Shown here one piece after another: positions 4,658 through 60,837 of a DNA stretch of 64,000 bases; the stretch's first letter is position 1, and each line of letters starts with the position of its first letter. The notes below the pieces were generated by a model. The model made no database searches. It was not told the DNA's origin and saw only the letters and a program-made list of their open reading frames with translations. The stretch is from the sequence record MH791398.1; one strand, 5' to 3'. The translations under genes were made by a program, and so were the position numbers.

Positions 4658-4685
4658 TTGATCTCATATCTAACTCGTGTATACT
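4658..4685 (+). promoter_or_regulatory. early sigma70-like promoter
   Basis: TTGATC-16-TATACT with TG extension. Confidence 0.6.
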
Positions 4686-4717: not shown

Positions 4718-5005
4718 ATGGTAATCGCACTTGGTTTTGTTGCTGGTGTTTGTTTCGTAAAATCGGTACAGGCTACTCGCGCAGCATATCAACGCGCTTT
4801 CACTACTGGCTATATCGTAGCCGGTCTTTCTTCCATATCTCTTCTTGCCATGTCTTAAGGGGATGTTATGACTTTTGCTCTGTTTGCAACCGGGTTTGGT
4901 TTAGGTACTGCTTTTATGGTATCGAAGAAAAAGAAACATAAGGTTATTGTGGTTGGTGTGAGTATTATTGCTGTTCTTGTTGAGGTTTTCCTACTTCCTA
5001 AATAG
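4718..5005 (+). CDS. two small membrane peptides (4718..4858, 46 aa; 4868..5005, 45 aa)
   Basis: RBS-preceded ATGs and hydrophobic translations (MVIALGFVAG..., MTFALFATGFGLG...). Confidence 0.6.
4997..5004 (+). promoter_or_regulatory. putative late promoter CCTAAATA
   Basis: Same 8-mer lies upstream of the spanins (60123) and the tail fibre gene (60853); variant of T4 late TATAAATA; 30 nt upstream of ATG 5034. Confidence 0.55.
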
Positions 5006-5033
5006 ATATGTAGATCTACGAAAGGAAAACAAC

Positions 5034-5909
5034 ATGTTGAAAACTAAAGAATTGTTCGAAACCCTGACCCGGTTTGATGAACAAATGGCACAAAGCCGAA
5101 ATCAAAAGGTCGAACTTACTAAAGATCAGGAATTCGAACTTAGCAAACAATCAAAGCTACCTGTTTCTATGCGGGTTGGTGCGTTTAAGGTTCAAAGTTC
5201 TGTTCATGCTCAAGCTCGCGCACACCAGCGAGCCGCTGCTAAAACGGCGGAAGAGTGGAAAGATTTTGCTCGAAAGATGGTAAAACACGTAGAAGCAAAC
5301 AAGATTAAGAATGGTACTTATATGTTCCATTCCCAATCGGAAAACCGCTCTGTAGTTGGTTCTGTAAAGGGTCGAGAAATCAATATAGTAACTGTGTTCC
5401 CAAAAGGAACTGGTGGTAAAATTTCTCATAAACAACAAGCTGCTGGACAAAAAAGCGCAATGATGGAATCGCTCGTTGAATCTCTTATGATACAAGACGA
5501 GTTTGAGTCTATGCTAAATGAAGCCAAGAATATCATTGGTTCTGATATAGATGGGGTTGAGGTGTTTGACCTTGACGAGGCAACAGAAAAGGCTGTTTCC
5601 GAAATGCCAGATGAACACAAGCCATACTGTCGTGATATTTGGCAGGATCCAATTCATCGGTCAACTGGGTCGGTTGCCCAGTTTGGTACAATTTTTCTTG
5701 ATGATTCTAACGATCCCGGTTTCCCTTTGATGATCGGTGATGTAAAGAAGGCTAAAATTGGAATCGGTGGTGAATATATTCCCATTGACCTTCGTCTAGA
5801 TTCCGGGAAATATGCATATGGTTCCATGGATGAACTAAAAGAGTTCCATCATGTGGATCTATATGATACAATTGCCGCTAGAAACTATGGGTATGGGAAG
5901 GATTACTAA
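5034..5909 (+). CDS. putative internal head protein with RegB/RelE-like N-terminal domain
   Basis: True start ATG 5034 (RBS AAAGGA); FKVQSSVHAQARAHQR...INIVTVFPKG; several xxE gp21-like sites (LVES, LNEA, LDEA). Confidence 0.5.
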   Translation: MLKTKELFETLTRFDEQMAQSRNQKVELTKDQEFELSKQSKLPVSMRVGAFKVQSSVHAQARAHQRAAAKTAEEWKDFARKMVKHVEANKIKNGTYMFHSQSENRSVVGSVKGREINIVTVFPKGTGGKISHKQQAAGQKSAMMESLVESLMIQDEFESMLNEAKNIIGSDIDGVEVFDLDEATEKAVSEMPDEHKPYCRDIWQDPIHRSTGSVAQFGTIFLDDSNDPGFPLMIGDVKKAKIGIGGEYIPIDLRLDSGKYAYGSMDELKEFHHVDLYDTIAARNYGYGKDY

Positions 5910-5910
5910 A

Positions 5911-6243
5911 ATGTTAAAGAATAAAGAATTTTTCGAACGAATCGATGAATCGTTTCAAATGAAAACATCCAAGGATTACAACCGGATTGTAAACCAATAC
6001 ATTTCTATTCTGAACAGTGTTCAAGCAAAAATGAATACTGCCGGTATGCGTGAGGCAAAACGTTTCTATGAAGTCCAAATGGGTGAATGGAAGCGTTGGG
6101 TAAAAGAAAACGTAGATATTACCAAGGTTAACATCAGCCCTATTGAGGATTTTGGTAAGATTACTTGGAAACGGTCTCAGTCTGACACACAACAAAGTTT
6201 TAACATCGCACACGGTAAACTTACCGGTATGCTCAAGAAATAA
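5911..6243 (+). CDS. putative internal head protein
   Basis: Start MLKNKEFFERIDES resembles a capsid-targeting leader; track start 5851 is upstream GTG. Confidence 0.5.
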   Translation: MLKNKEFFERIDESFQMKTSKDYNRIVNQYISILNSVQAKMNTAGMREAKRFYEVQMGEWKRWVKENVDITKVNISPIEDFGKITWKRSQSDTQQSFNIAHGKLTGMLKK

Positions 6244-6251
6244 GGAACAAA

Positions 6252-6524
6252 ATGAAAAAGTTTAATGAACTGGATAACCGCCTCGACGAGTCTATGATTG
6301 CAGAATCCAAAGATCTGATCAGTTCTGACTTCAAAAACTCCATTGCAAAGTTTTTTAATACTTGGATTGAACATCACGAACTAAAGTTTGGTTCTTTCGA
6401 AGCTAAGGCTAAATGGTCGGGAGAACAAATTGCAAAGAAAACCGCTATCGGTAAAGCGGCTGTTATGTTTGCTATGGGTCAAAACAAAGATGTTGTTGAT
6501 GCAGTAATGAAAGCCAAGAAATAA
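6252..6524 (+). CDS. putative internal head protein; paralog of 40112..40291
   Basis: MKKFNEL...LDESMIAES leader resembles the T4 CTS MKTYQEFIAE. Confidence 0.55.
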   Translation: MKKFNELDNRLDESMIAESKDLISSDFKNSIAKFFNTWIEHHELKFGSFEAKAKWSGEQIAKKTAIGKAAVMFAMGQNKDVVDAVMKAKK

Positions 6525-6528
6525 TTTT

Positions 6529-6578
6529 ATGGAGTCTTGCGAGAAATCGCTTGACTCCATTTTTGTTTCTGATACTAT
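6529..6578 (+). terminator. terminator overlapping an early promoter (PeSL-like cassette)
   Basis: ATGGAGTC..GCGA-GAAA-TCGC..GACTCCAT then TTTT; TTGACT (6551) in the 3' arm, TACTAT at 6573. Confidence 0.8.
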
Positions 6579-9006: not shown

Positions 9007-9112
9007 TAGTATCACCTGAAATCAAAATATAAAATCTCTATAAGTATTTATATAGAAGATCTATAATTAGAGAGCGAAGCGAACCGCCGAAGGCGTACTC
9101 ACTACGTTCGTA
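9007..9112. repeat. dispersed repeat copy 1: AT block plus GC mini-hairpin cluster
   Basis: CTATAAGTATTTATATAGAAGATCTATAATTAGA at 9038-9071 is identical to 52579-52612; GCGAAGC and GCCGAAGGC follow. Confidence 0.9.
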
Positions 9113-25807: not shown

Positions 25808-26482
25808 ATGAATGTAAACGAAAAGAATGATGAAACGACAGTTAACATTATAAATCTTTTTTCTGATGAAGATATAGTAAAGATGAGGTCTTCATCTTCG
25901 TCTAATTATAGAAGTATTATGGCATCTGTATTTGACAATATTGATATATCGTCATATACGAAAGAAGACAAAGAACTAATCGATAACTATGCTCTAGACT
26001 ACTATATCAATACAAATAAGTTTCTTTGTGGTGAAGAATTATCACCAGATCTAAATCCATCAGCGGTAGATGTCAACGAATACATTAGAAAAATGCATGA
26101 CGTGATAGACCGTTCTTGCACTATATCCGCTAGATTGTATAGAACTATATATCTATCTAAATCTCAGTGGGAAGAAGTGCTGAAAAAGAAAGAGATAACG
26201 AATCTCGGGTTTTGTTCCACATCAATAAACCCAGTACCGTTTAAGCCAGTTGATGGGATGCGAGATGATAACGTAAAAATTCAAATCGAATTCTATGTTA
26301 ACGATATGAAGGCCATTCCAGTTTGCACAGTTTTAAAAGACAAAGAATCTTCTTTCAAATCCGAGATGGAATTTTTATTACCTCCGGGTATCACGTTTTC
26401 TATTGAAAAGATAATAAGTAACAATAAACACTATAAAGATAAGGCGTTTGTTTATAAGAGATTAATTTGTCGGATAAAATAA
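25808..26482 (+). CDS. ADP-ribosyltransferase (VIP2/ExoS-like; T4 Mod/Alt type)
   Basis: R-S-E triad: LYR, FCSTS, SEMEFLLPPG; upstream Y..INKFL-like helix. Confidence 0.8.
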   Translation: MNVNEKNDETTVNIINLFSDEDIVKMRSSSSSNYRSIMASVFDNIDISSYTKEDKELIDNYALDYYINTNKFLCGEELSPDLNPSAVDVNEYIRKMHDVIDRSCTISARLYRTIYLSKSQWEEVLKKKEITNLGFCSTSINPVPFKPVDGMRDDNVKIQIEFYVNDMKAIPVCTVLKDKESSFKSEMEFLLPPGITFSIEKIISNNKHYKDKAFVYKRLICRIK

Positions 26483-40111: not shown

Positions 40112-40291
40112 ATGATTAACACAGAATTCAAAAAAGCGGTTGCTGAGTTTTTCAACACTCATATCGAAGATCAGAAACTGATCTTCGAATCCTTTGATGC
40201 CAAAGTTTTGTGGTGTGGTAAGCAGATCAATGATAAAACTCCTGTTGGTCGTGCGGCCATTATGTTTGCAATGTCTAAAGTAAAGGTGTAA
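40112..40291 (+). CDS. 59-aa protein, leaderless paralog of 6252..6524 (not in ORF track)
   Basis: MINTEFKKAVAEFFNTHIEDQKLIFESFDAKVLWCGKQINDKTPVGRAAIMFAMSKVKV; RBS AAGGAG. Confidence 0.8.
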   Translation: MINTEFKKAVAEFFNTHIEDQKLIFESFDAKVLWCGKQINDKTPVGRAAIMFAMSKVKV

Positions 40292-52550: not shown

Positions 52551-52646
52551 TATCATATGAAATCAAATTATAGATTTCCTATAAGTATTTATATAGAAGA
52601 TCTATAATTAGAACGAGTGAAACGAGTACGGCGTAGCCGGTTCGCT
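52548..52646. repeat. dispersed repeat copy 2: AT block plus inverted GC mini-hairpin cluster
   Basis: 34 bp identical to 9038-9071; GAGTACG..GGTTCGC is the reverse complement of the copy-1 GC module. Confidence 0.9.
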
Positions 52647-55020: not shown

Positions 55021-55927
55021 ATGTCTATAGAAATAAACATTATGAGACAGGCAGAAACAGAAACAAACGGGATGTTGCCTGCGCTCATCCCATCATGTAT
55101 GGGGGCATTGGTAGCAAGTGTACTTGTTGGTTGTGGGTTTGTGCCGGATGTCAATCTATACATACTGTTATGTGCCATATTTTATGTTCTCCTTGATATT
55201 GTGTTCATGGTAGTTGTATGGATTAAGCGCCCCAATTATGGCAAAGAGTTTAAACATCCATTATCTATGTGTATGCTATACTCATTTTGCGATAATAACG
55301 TTGGGAAATACCTTCATATTTATAAAAATACACCAAACTTTAATCTACGAATTACTATTGCAGGAATAGTAATATACTTTTGTGATTTTGTATTTTATCT
55401 TGGTTTATTTGGTGTTCCTGTAATGGTATCATCTTGGTTGTTCCTCTAAATATAGTTTTGTAAAAAAGGAAAATGAAATGTCTATTGAAACTCGTGTAAC
55501 AAAAGTAAAACAACGTATTCATGAAGAAACCCAACGGGTTAAGTCAAATGCGATTGTTACGTGGGGCCTGTTCTTCATGGCAGCAGCCCTTGCATCAATC
55601 CCAGCATCCACTATGTATGGCCCTATTATCATTGGCGCTATCGTGATGGTGATGTTCCAGTATCTGACCATGATCTCTTATGCTAAAGAACGGGTAGGTT
55701 ATCTTGGTAAAGCTTATGCTAACCCAATGACACTGATCTACATCGAGAGTGGTATTGATGGGGTTAAAGATCTGGAAGAGTCAATTCGGAAATGGGAAGC
55801 AATGACCAACGATGAACGAGAGGCTACCAACAAACGAATCAATGCAATCACGGTTGTGGCTCTTTTGGCTCTCATTGCTGCTGTTTCTGGCTTCTTCTGT
55901 GGTCTTTTCTGGCTTCTCCCAGTATAA
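55021..55927 (+). CDS. two multi-pass membrane proteins (55021..55449, 55478..55927)
   Basis: Several hydrophobic segments in each. Confidence 0.7.
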
Positions 55928-60163: not shown

Positions 60164-60541
60164 ATGGTAAGATACAAGGCAATTATATTTGGGATTCTTC
60201 TTATTTTGGTTGGTGGGTCTACTTGGTATATGTTCAACAAGATCGAATCACAGGCAATAACAATCGGAGAGATGACCCAACAACTAGAAACAATGACATC
60301 CAAATTATCCGCCATGGAATTGAGTATAAGCGATTTCAAACAACAGTCCAGTGAGTATAGTCAGACGGAAGAGAAATCGAATAGAGAGCTTTCTAAGCGC
60401 ATTGGTACGCTGGAATCTAATGCTAGTCGCGGTAAGGATGCAATAGACAAGAAACCTAAGCTAGTAGAGAAGATAATCCAGAATGATTATGAAGAGTTTG
60501 GAAGCAGAATGGATTGCCTTACTCTGGGGGAATGTAAATGA
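60164..60541 (+). CDS. i-spanin (Rz/PseT.3-like)
   Basis: N-terminal TM then long coiled coil; ATG 60164 after GGAG; overlaps the o-spanin start. Confidence 0.8.
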   Translation: MVRYKAIIFGILLILVGGSTWYMFNKIESQAITIGEMTQQLETMTSKLSAMELSISDFKQQSSEYSQTEEKSNRELSKRIGTLESNASRGKDAIDKKPKLVEKIIQNDYEEFGSRMDCLTLGECK

Positions 60542-60837
60542 AAAAAATTCTAATTATGATGTGTATAGTGGTTCTTGCTGCATGTTCAACACCACCGAGA
60601 CCAGACCCGGTATTAGTGTTTCATCCAAATAGACCAATCCCTGTAAAAACTTATATTCCTAAATGGACTGTTATTAAGGAAGGTGAAACAACTTATGTCG
60701 GGATGACATATGAGGACAGTTTAAGGTATAGGGCTTGGCTTGAAAAAATAGGTGTTTATATAGATTCACAAAATAGAATGTTATGTTCTTATAGAAAGGA
60801 TCTGAAAGAACCACAATGTCAAAAAGTCCCCAAATAA
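60538..60837 (+). CDS. o-spanin lipoprotein (Rz1/PseT.2-like)
   Basis: Lipobox LAAC, Pro-rich segment, MTYEDSL and C-terminal Cys pair. Confidence 0.8.
   Translation: MKKILIMMCIVVLAACSTPPRPDPVLVFHPNRPIPVKTYIPKWTVIKEGETTYVGMTYEDSLRYRAWLEKIGVYIDSQNRMLCSYRKDLKEPQCQKVPK

Follow-up and report, generated by a model that had tools for sequence, protein, structure and literature searches.

A late gene island within the early genes of Aeromonas phage Asswx_1 that may encode three T4-kind internal head proteins

Aeromonas phage Asswx_1 is a T4-like phage (Ceceduovirus), and within a long stretch of its early genes a late motif is located upstream of three closely spaced open reading frames (g12, g13 and g14). 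What could be the role of late proteins encoded among early genes? Proteins injected with phage DNA act ahead of phage gene expression, which makes them prime candidates for shutting off the host and evading immediate defences. The window analysed here was the first 64 kb of the genome, and the following features were identified in the island and its flanks.

4658-4685, plus strand: early sigma-70-type promoter (TTGATC, 16-nt spacer, TATACT), driving the two small genes for membrane proteins that precede the island
4997-5004, plus strand: late promoter (C)CTAAATA, here CCTAAATA, 29 nt from the motif end to the g12 ATG at 5034
5034-5909, plus strand: g12, 291 aa, N-terminus MLKTKELFE
5911-6243, plus strand: g13, 110 aa, N-terminus MLKNKEFFERIDES
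6252-6524, plus strand: g14, 90 aa, N-terminus MKKFNEL, with MIAES by residue 19
6529-6560, plus strand: intrinsic terminator closing the island, hairpin dG -19.8 kcal/mol, z = -5.4 vs shuffles
6551-6578, plus strand: early promoter (TTGACT, 16-nt spacer, TACTAT, with TG), restarting early transcription past the island

The hairpin at 6529-6560 was directly followed on its 3' side by a U-run (UUUUUGUUU), and early sigma-70-type promoters were present on both sides of the three genes. The late promoter ahead of the genes, the terminator at their end and their position in the early region had all been claimed in the preliminary description, and each of these points was confirmed. From its sequence, the block 4997-6560 is proposed to be a self-contained late transcription unit. 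For g13, the GenBank start is 5851, which lies within g12, while all homologs favour the start at 5911 that was used here.

The motif CCTAAATA overlapped the last codons and the TAG stop of an upstream 45-aa gene (4868-5005). A convincing terminator between the 4658 promoter and 5034 was not found in the terminator scan, so early read-through into the island would be possible. A stem of 4985-4992 with 5023-5030, which would mask the Shine-Dalgarno sequence (SD) of g12, was predicted to be missing from the late transcript and present in the read-through RNA, and for this reason a translational control like that of T4 gene e was considered. It was rejected, with a fold no better than shuffles (z -0.75) and not conserved in phage 65.2.

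CTAAATA was rare in the window (6 observed vs 12.1 expected), and the copies on the coding strand were located 25-38 nt upstream of a gene start in 4/4 cases. Genome-wide, 40 of the 55 copies had an ORF start with SD and ATG no more than 90 nt away, and the genes preceded by the motif included gp23, gp20, gp19, gp24, gp22, gp67, gp13, gp15, wac, gp34, gp48, gp4, gp9, hoc and inh. The distance from motif to ATG at the island matched that at gp23, gp20, gp19, gp24 and other late genes. The T4 late motif TATAAATA had no association with gene starts in the Asswx_1 genome. In the related phage Aeh1, CTAAATA has been reported to be the late promoter (Nolan 2006, PMC1524935), and, judged by its placement, it is the late promoter of Asswx_1 as well. 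It has been stated that late promoters in these phages precede T4 late-gene orthologs only (PMC1524935), which the late promoter at the island would correct. The motif was also found upstream of non-virion genes, such as the spanins (60164-60837) and a gp21-inhibitor homolog, and only four gene-preceding copies existed across about 100 kb of early genes. With a late motif at the standard distance that is kept in relatives, the three proteins are predicted to be made during prohead assembly.

The late promoter and the [L/I]-x-E sites were conserved across five Aeromonas phage genera. Promoter and leaders occupied the same locus in 65.2, avDM6 and ZPAH1, where the sequence upstream of the promoter was non-coding and different from that of Asswx_1, and in Aeh1, PX29 and phiAS5 the promoter was located one gene farther upstream. 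A terminator equivalent to 6529-6560 followed the island in 65.2; in ZPAH1 one terminator was placed directly before the late promoter and another after the island. The gene content was variable: the islands of CC2, P19 and AS-szw had g12 but no g14, an unrelated gene took the place of g14 in ZPAH1, the Aeh1-type phages carried g12 without g13 or g14, and the gene order was swapped in 65.2. The parts of the three proteins, together with a second copy of one domain, are given below (the arrow marks a predicted cut, here and in the text).

5034-5081, plus strand: g12 leader, residues 1-16, a predicted capsid-targeting propeptide with a predicted cut after FDE16
5082-5522, plus strand: conserved core of g12, residues 17-163, RelE/ParE/RegB-like fold over about residues 45-139
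5523-5909, plus strand: variable C-terminal module of g12, residues 164-291 and the stop codon, with at least two unrelated versions in relatives
5911-5949, plus strand: g13 leader, residues 1-13, predicted cut IDE13↓S
6252-6305, plus strand: g14 leader, residues 1-18, sites LDE13↓S and IAE18↓S
40112-40291, plus strand: leaderless paralog of the mature g14 domain, 59 aa, served by an SD and an early-type promoter (TTGACG, then TATAC) of its own

It had been noticed earlier that the three N-termini resemble T4 capsid-targeting sequences cleaved after xxE. The likeness of the leaders stood, and protease-type sites conserved in homologs were present at the leader ends of g13 (IDE13), g14 (LDE13 and IAE18) and g12 (FDE16↓Q), whereas the site first proposed for g12, LFE at residues 7-9, was not conserved and reads LFA in both P0001 (95% identity) and P0002 (about 70%). 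At the position of FDE16↓Q, which is the conserved aligned site, homologs show IEE↓S, LDE↓S, LYE↓S and INE↓S. The g12 leader of Asswx_1 is a 16-residue variant with Phe instead of Leu/Ile at P3, and it was predicted to be a helix in the AF2 model. Similarity among g12, g13 and g14 was limited to the N-termini, and their longer leaders, with L7/F8 (g12), F7/F8 (g13) and F4/L7 (g14), do not fit the strict T4-type pattern.

The g12 protein belongs to an unnamed family, for which 83 representatives were collected at E <= 1e-3 among 1.84 billion sequences. Leaders were counted in these 83 and close relatives (n=90) by a T4-type rule, which asked for Glu at residue 9 or 10 and a hydrophobic residue at each of 4, 7 and 8, and the rule was satisfied by 32/90 family sequences vs 0/441 Asswx_1 proteins; a regular expression for the leader, written post hoc, matched three early proteins as well and serves as a rough filter only. 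The family consensus M-K-T/S-F-K-Q/E-F-L-x-E-S, in a leader of 9-10 residues, could be set beside MKTYQEFIAE of T4, and its conserved positions were 4, 7, 8 and 10. In mutagenesis of T4 IPIII, positions 4 and 7 matter for targeting, and 8 and 10 for processing (PMC9026906). When the g12 family was compared with T4 IPII and IPIII by hhalign, residues 1-11 were aligned and nothing beyond, and the g12 homologs of Aeh1, PX29 and phiAS5 begin with M-K-S/T-L-x-x-F-L-A-E↓S. Fusions in the family include RelA/SpoT and kinase domains, and in one member a SAM lyase is fused behind a leader; the contig of this member carries a gene for a T4-type major capsid protein (Gp23) as well. Elsewhere in the Asswx_1 genome, a leader-tagged J-domain protein and a leader-tagged Zeta-toxin-like kinase were observed.

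In g13, the residues M1, N4, F7, F8, R10 and E13 were invariant among homologs, and a homolog from the non-T4-like phage TS9 (93 aa) was leaderless. The residue-18 site of g14 was retained in the form LSE↓S by 65.2, avDM6 and P0019, a metagenomic relative. The early gene at 40112-40291 shared 52% identity (E 1e-16) with the mature domain of g14, and its Met1 was placed opposite g14 residue 22. The leaders are thus conserved and modular, with relatives of both g13 and g14 existing without them.

The machinery which would process such leaders is present in Asswx_1, with gp21 (117546-118271), gp22 (118293-119126) and annotated gp67 and gp68. The gp22 protein had many [L/I]-x-E↓S sites, among them IAE↓S and IDE↓S with the tripeptides of g14 and g13, and gp23 had LTE↓A where its maturation site is expected. 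In T4, Glu-to-Asp changes at the cleavage site stop processing and leave targeting intact. N-terminal [LI]xES sites were enriched among late-promoter genes (Fisher p = 0.003), and the scan recovered gp22 and gp24, whose T4 homologs are known gp21 substrates, as positive controls; the motif [L/I]-x-E is short, and the looser [LIVFM]-x-E within residues 8-20 occurred in 27% of all Asswx_1 proteins. Taken together, the island is probably a late unit encoding three internal head proteins of the T4 kind, which would be targeted by their leaders, cleaved by gp21 and injected, and the core of g12 would be RNase-like. The parts of the internal-head-protein reading that can be tested on sequence came out favourable, with the island leaders as longer variants outside the strict T4-type pattern. 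With a late promoter and T4-like address tags, the three products are probably injected with the DNA.

It seems rather unlikely that g12, g13 and g14 are late proteins staying in the infected cell, where they would serve assembly, lysis timing or late host control, with the N-terminal likeness arising from an amphipathic helix or common ancestry. Late promoters do precede non-virion genes such as the spanins and the gp21-inhibitor homolog, and some long family members (the RelA_SpoT fusions) carry the leader-like stretch internally rather than at the N-terminus, so it might be partly a structural helix. However, the conserved leader positions are those which target and process T4 IPIII, the leaderless versions of g13 and g14 occur where head targeting is not expected (a non-T4-like phage and an early paralog), and a cleavage-type site is retained while the rest of the leader drifts. 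These points favour internal head proteins. Virion proteomics was not found in the literature on P19 and AS-zj, in the comparative genomics of Aeh1 or in T4 reviews. The sequencing runs on record yielded assembled contigs only, with none entered as RNA.

As for the function of g12, the largest of the three, H58, R66, W75, S100, T120, P123 and E145 were nearly invariant in its core (69 sequences). The AF2 model built on this 69-sequence alignment reached pLDDT 94-98 for residues 30-140 (an earlier alignment of 11 sequences gave pLDDT 45), and two helices on a four-stranded antiparallel sheet were present in it. Of the top 17 VIA matches (Z 5-6.4, 72-84 residues aligned), nearly all were RelE, HigB, ParE and YoeB toxins, and T4 RegB was matched with Z 4.3. 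Foldseek ranked ParE, HigB2 and RelE at the top with E about 0.1, and a RegB homolog was among the BFVD structure matches with probability 0.96. The core has a RelE/ParE/RegB-like fold, an assignment of moderate strength because the structural Z values are middling (Z < 8). The motif H-x3-R-A-x-Q-R puts H58, located at the start of the first core helix, opposite the catalytic His48 of RegB, in an alignment (E 0.18) not significant alone. On the model, g12 looks like an RNA-cutting toxin, and its core would most likely be an endoribonuclease.

Sequence models gave no match to the g12 core (Pfam, PDB and NCBI-style profiles); Pfam at E <= 10 returned only noise, and the 69 relatives had no Pfam toxin-fold family in the core region at E <= 0.01. 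For g12, g13, g14 and their parts, Pfam, PHROGs ("unknown function" families only), PDB sequence profiles and two ESM Atlas searches were uninformative. The core was also considered as a mimic of the antitoxin domain in CapRel-type fused toxSAS defence proteins, and this was rejected as unsupported: its fold is RelE toxin-like, not antitoxin-like. Three relatives pair RelA_SpoT with a C-terminal core, on contigs too short for gene context, and P0087 had no match by sequence to CapRel or any other RelA/SpoT structure in the PDB.

The g12 core ends with a conserved site, L-N-E163↓A. The following residues 164-291 had low AF2 confidence and no family match in Pfam, and this module was missing in short forms of the family; in the metagenomic P0008 it was replaced by the g14 domain, with both [L/I]-x-E↓S sites retained in the linker between it and the g12 core. 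From these features the following course may be suggested, in which we infer packaging, cleavage, injection and RNase activity of the island products. Each of g12, g13 and g14 would be made late with a short N-terminal leader, which would dock the protein on the gp22 scaffolding core of the prohead. The gp21 prohead protease would then cut the leader after [L/I/F]-x-E (E16 in g12, E13 in g13, E13 and/or E18 in g14), and the mature proteins would be retained in the DNA-filled head and pass, along with the DNA, into the next host. A second cut at E163 of g12 would probably free the RelE/RegB-like core and the fast-evolving C-terminal module, and the freed core may act on host mRNA or translation right after injection. 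The g14 protein would be a packaged copy of a small domain which is also made early, and leaderless, from gene 40112. The idea of injected takeover or anti-defence factors is given indirect support by the RelE/RegB-like fold modelled for g12 and by the SAM lyase fusion.

The RelE/ParE fold of the g12 core, the two small genes directly downstream of g12, the natural fusion of core and g14 domain in P0008 and the second, early copy of that domain would also suit a toxin-antitoxin-like module for superinfection exclusion or competition, in which g12 is the toxin, g13 or g14 the inhibitor and 40112 an extra antidote. This is quite improbable: an antitoxin should always be co-encoded, and g13 and g14 were not consistently beside g12 homologs, with g14 lacking next to g12 in CC2, P19 and AS-szw, an unrelated gene in ZPAH1 and neither small gene in Aeh1-type phages. 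It also leaves the late promoter and the T4-type leaders on three proteins unexplained. Such a module would be compatible with packaging, since the inhibitor could be packaged alongside the toxin.

Internal head proteins are already known from T4, and the comparison supports the island products as further proteins of this kind. T4 IPI, IPII and IPIII likewise have a short leader at the N-terminus, in which the same key positions precede a gp21-type Glu-X site, unrelated and fast-evolving mature parts behind the shared leader, and genes outside the head cluster; they too are proposed injected factors, and T4 IPI* blocks GmrSD. In contrast, their leader is 10 residues long vs 13-18 in Asswx_1, the mature domains of the island proteins are unrelated to IPII and IPIII, and only the island is bracketed by a clean late promoter and a terminator. 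By tblastn, T4 ipII, ipIII and alt had no match at the island, and ipII and ipIII had none anywhere in the Asswx_1 genome. T4 ipII and ipIII have no TATAAATA in the 90 nt upstream and look early-type by eye, which, with the overlap of the motif with the end of the 4868-5005 gene and the lack of an upstream terminator in Asswx_1, could suggest that CTAAATA at 4998 is fortuitous and the three are ordinary early genes served by the 4658 promoter, but this is very improbable for a motif that is two-fold depleted overall yet stands at the standard distance from an ATG, is one of just four gene-preceding copies among the early genes, and is conserved in 65.2, avDM6 and ZPAH1 behind differing non-coding sequence, in ZPAH1 behind a terminator.

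T4 Alt, a head-packaged, gp21-processed and injected ADP-ribosyltransferase, resembles g12 in several respects: its ATG is preceded at about 28 nt by a late promoter, its leader MELITELFDE resembles the g12 start and contains FDE as at FDE16, and it is an enzyme effector processed at both ends, as the second conserved site E163 would allow in the g12 family. Alt differs in its enzyme fold, and g12 is without an ART domain. The sole Alt-like match by tblastn in the Asswx_1 genome was an early-region gene (25808-26482).

The g12 core shares its fold with the BECR-type proteins RegB, RelE, YoeB, HigB and ParE by two structure-search methods. Sequence similarity between g12 and these proteins is not significant, and His68, the second catalytic His of RegB, has no invariant counterpart in g12; RegB is an early, cytoplasmic and leaderless enzyme, whereas g12 has, from its sequence, a late promoter and a leader. 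PBECR domains, which occur in the "polyvalent proteins" of phages, are RNases of the BECR fold for which packaging in the head is predicted (Iyer et al. 2017, PMC5512222). In both cases a RelE-like RNase is predicted to be delivered from the capsid, a His in the N-terminal helix is combined with a conserved Ser/Thr in a late strand (H58 and T120 in g12), and fusions to RelA/SpoT and kinase domains occur. The delivery differs: g12 would use a T4-type leader and the prohead protease, not a MuF or portal fusion with an in-built metallopeptidase. Pfam contains PBECR models, and with no Pfam model matching the core or its 69 relatives, there was therefore no match to PBECR1-5. The T-even hyperplastic IP loci of coliphages (Repoila et al. 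1994, as cited in PMC3012670) are, as far as that citation describes them, alike in that gene content varies among close relatives and the leader is retained. At the island, g14 is present or absent, 65.2 has a swapped gene order, and g12 occurs with differing C-terminal modules. The hosts and control differ, as far as that description goes, with coliphages in one case and Aeromonas phages (Emmerichvirinae; Cinqassovirus, Angelvirus, Chrysonvirus) with another late promoter in the other.

To our knowledge, very few injected phage proteins are known outside T4 (IPI*, Alt). The combination of late promoter, T4-type leader and [L/I]-x-E site may serve as a rule for finding such proteins in poorly annotated phages, and a large unnamed family with a RelE/RegB-like core is opened to testing. 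The island would provide natural cases of a leader added to an existing domain, which bears on how phages recruit cargo, and the modularity of the leader bears on the loading of foreign proteins into capsids. As a tentative possibility, aquatic T4-like phages may share a widespread family of leader-tagged RNases of the RelE/RegB fold which carry swappable effector modules, reach the capsid through the T4 system of targeting and cleavage, and are injected to cut host RNA ahead of all phage gene expression. If so, the variable C-terminal module, SAM lyase, Zeta-like kinase and RelA/SpoT would be the modules, freed at L-x-E sites, and the injected dose would be controlled or complemented by leaderless early copies such as 40112. 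Along with the J-domain protein and the Zeta-toxin-like kinase, both leader-tagged, these proteins would then form a whole injected "effector kit".

The window is identical (100%) to positions 1-64000 of MH791398.1, the 229,103-bp genome of the T4-like Aeromonas phage Asswx_1 (Straboviridae, Emmerichvirinae, Ceceduovirus), and promoter and protein statistics were computed on the whole record, beyond the window. The preliminary description had placed a late-type motif, three genes and a terminator in this early region, and that anatomy was borne out, since the motif, the genes, the hairpin and the flanking early promoters were all located:

4658-4685 and 6551-6578 (+), early sigma-70-type promoters flanking the island
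4997-5004 (+), late promoter CCTAAATA, its end 29 nt 5' of the g12 ATG
5034-5909 (+), g12, 291 aa
start 5911 (+), g13, 110 aa, one base after g12
6252-6524 (+), g14, 90 aa
6529-6560 (+), terminator hairpin and U-run closing the block, dG -19.8 kcal/mol, z -5.4

In MH791398.1 and all relatives the three genes are annotated as hypothetical proteins only. The GenBank start of g13 (5851), giving a 59-nt overlap with g12, was backed by no homolog; all homologs begin at the 5911 ATG, and the annotated reading frame therefore probably includes 20 codons too many (window 5851-5910). Early read-through from the 4658 promoter into the island is possible. A hairpin blocking translation of early read-through RNA was also considered, and was unsupported.

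CTAAATA is the late promoter of Asswx_1. The genome carries 55 copies, 40 of them followed within 90 nt by a Shine-Dalgarno sequence and the ATG of an ORF, and the motif precedes gp23, gp20, gp19, gp24, gp22, gp67, gp13 and gp15 as well as wac, gp34, gp48, gp4, gp9, hoc and a homolog of the gp21 inhibitor. It is rarer than expected in the window (6 copies vs 12.1), where all four coding-strand copies precede genes. The T4 motif TATAAATA, with 22 genome copies, had no association with gene starts. Six of these copies lie in a repeated intergenic palindrome of about 32 nt, present in six near-identical copies, none adjoining a gene start:

window 9021-9052 and 52562-52593 (-), palindrome repeats
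record near 81194, 123433, 147992 and 189621, four further copies

The late promoter of the related phage Aeh1 was also derived as CTAAATA, and was reported only 5' of orthologs of T4 late genes (Nolan et al. 2006, PMC1524935); the Asswx_1 island is an exception to this statement. The co-directional early genes span about 100 kb, and only four copies stand before a gene there, that of the island and three more:

window 55446-55927 (+), motif before 55478, 149-aa predicted membrane protein adjoining the topoisomerase gene
record 189781-190308 (+), outside the window, SLT-domain transglycosylase with a signal-peptide-like start
record 204327-204701 (+), outside the window, 124 aa, starting MKTIKQSIIE/S (slash, predicted cut)

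The first would be a further isolated late gene, and the start of the third has a strong likeness to a T4 leader, the short N-terminal stretch that targets proteins to the capsid.

The products of g12, g13 and g14 are probably internal head proteins, which is the best explanation of their sequences. Likeness among them is limited to the N-termini, and in each family the leader ends in a conserved protease-type site. In the g13 leader M1, N4, F7, F8, R10 and E13 are invariant, and the site is [I/L]-[D/N]-E13 with S, A or T as the next residue. The g14 site is IAE18/S in Asswx_1 and LSE18/S in 65.2, avDM6 and the metagenomic relative P0019, while that of g12 is FDE16/Q, aligned with IEE/S, LDE/S, LYE/S and INE/S in homologs. 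These sites uphold the preliminary view that the leaders resemble the T4 type; LFE9 in g12 did not stand as part of it, being LFA in the close relatives P0001 and P0002.

In T4, L/I-x-E is the site after which the prohead protease gp21 cleaves, and IPIII needs no more than its first 10 residues for packaging (PMC9026906). Asswx_1 encodes gp21, gp22, gp67 and gp68; its scaffolding core gp22 contains many [L/I]-x-E/S sites, IAE/S and IDE/S among them, and gp23 has LTE/A at the expected maturation point. Scanning 441 predicted Asswx_1 proteins for an [LI]xES site whose last residue falls at 9-20 gave nine matches (g13, g14, gp22 and gp24, a further two genes with late promoters, and three others), with enrichment in late-promoter genes (p = 0.003) even when g13 and g14 were scored as not late. 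T4 Alt, with TATAAATA 28 nt 5', starts MELITELFDE, close to the g12 start and sharing the FDE tripeptide.

The wider g12 family is the strongest evidence for the internal-head-protein reading. Searching 1.84 billion representative proteins with a profile built from g12 and ten close relatives gave 83 members at E <= 1e-3, most of 120-180 aa, with a common core at about residues 28-126 of g12. A T4-type leader (9-10 residues, hydrophobic at positions 4, 7 and 8, Glu at 9 or 10) starts 32 of the 90 family sequences examined (the 83 members and close relatives) vs 0 of the 441 Asswx_1 proteins. The consensus of the family reads M-K-T/S-F-K-Q/E-F-L-x-E-S, and T4 IPII and IPIII start MKTYQEFIAE/A; with hhalign, residues 1-11 of the family align with these two proteins and nothing beyond. 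The conserved positions are those found important by amber-suppressor mutagenesis in T4, where 4 and 7 serve targeting and 8 and 10 processing (PMC9026906).

Judged from the alignments, the leader is an add-on module. Residues 22-79 of g14 match the whole 59-aa product of gene 40112-40291 (52% identity, E 1e-16), whose Met1 pairs with g14 residue 22 and which has its own Shine-Dalgarno sequence and an early-type promoter. The 93-aa g13 homolog of TS9, a non-T4-like Aeromonas phage (Plateaulakevirus), begins at the end of the g13 leader, and in the metagenomic protein P0008 a g12 core is fused to a g14 domain by a linker that retains both [L/I]-x-E/S sites. Since a second conserved site, [L/M/I]-x-E163/A, sits at the boundary of the g12 core and a variable C-terminal module, g12 may be cut into two mature proteins, similar to T4 Alt, which is processed at both ends (PMC9026906). 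Long family members include one with a SAM lyase, one with a Zeta-like kinase and three with RelA_SpoT domains. The first lies on a metagenomic contig also encoding a T4-type major capsid protein Gp23, and may be an injected anti-restriction enzyme:

L010:5001-6179, SAM lyase fused to a g12-type core, 392 aa, own leader MVNNQEIINE/A

The mature g12, g13 and g14 proteins were named by none of the sequence libraries searched, and not one Pfam model matched the g12 core. AlphaFold with a 69-sequence alignment gave pLDDT 94-98 over g12 residues 30-140. Foldseek with this core placed ParE, HigB2 and RelE at the top, weakly (E about 0.1), and in an exhaustive VIA-align search RelE, HigB, ParE, YoeB and YafQ toxins made up nearly all of the best 17 (Z 5-6.4, rmsd about 3 A, 72-84 residues aligned), with the Cami1 RelE-like domain at Z 5.7 and T4 RegB at Z 4.3; a RegB homolog was matched in a viral structure library at probability 0.96. 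A RelE/RegB-type fold is predicted with moderate confidence, because the structure-match scores are middling. H58, R66, W75, S100, T120, P123 and E145 are near-invariant in the family, and hhalign pairs H58-x3-R-A-x-Q-R of g12 with H48-x3-R-A-x-Q-R of T4 RegB (E 0.18, alone not significant). RegB, in which His48 is one of two catalytic histidines, is known to be structurally related to RelE and YoeB (PMC3014915). The core also fits the description of PBECR, phage RNases of the BECR fold for which delivery from the capsid is predicted (Iyer et al. 2017, PMC5512222). If packaged, g12 may act as an RNase effector, a tentative reasoned inference.

Two more late-promoter genes encode proteins with effector-like domains and a leader-like N-terminus closed by an L-x-E site, and these may be part of one injected set with the g12-g14 products:

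record 75430-76443 (-), outside the window, DnaJ-domain protein, 337 aa, starting MSKMFNELFE/S
record 67315-68166 (-), outside the window, Zeta-toxin-like P-loop kinase, 283 aa, starting MKMKFSEFVQLEE/K

The J-domain homolog of Vibrio phage VmeM-32 has a T4-type leader with TATAAATA 5' of its gene, which is two genes away from that of the g12 homolog. Separately, tblastn matched residues 403-590 of T4 Alt, in its ADP-ribosyltransferase part, weakly (E 4e-4) to the early-region hypothetical protein at window 25808-26482 (+), which may be a leaderless enzyme of the Mod/Alt kind.

In 65.2 and avDM6 (Ishigurovirus) CTAAATA stands 29 nt 5' of the g12 homolog in otherwise different non-coding sequence, and the gene order is g12-g14-g13. 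The ZPAH1 island is insulated at both ends, because one intrinsic terminator lies immediately 5' of the late promoter and a second, with an early promoter, follows the island. In three further genera (Aeh1, PX29 and phiAS5) the motif is 5' of a conserved membrane-protein gene (85/86 aa) that overlaps the g12 homolog and has no counterpart in Asswx_1:

L007:1176-1433 (Aeh1)
L016:900-1160 (PX29)
L017:873-1133 (phiAS5)

The g14 gene is absent from the island of CC2, P19, G2 and AS-szw and its position is taken by an unrelated gene in ZPAH1, a plasticity of gene content similar to that of T-even IP loci. The Asswx_1 island would add new members to a system of a known kind, which the g12 family usefully widens.
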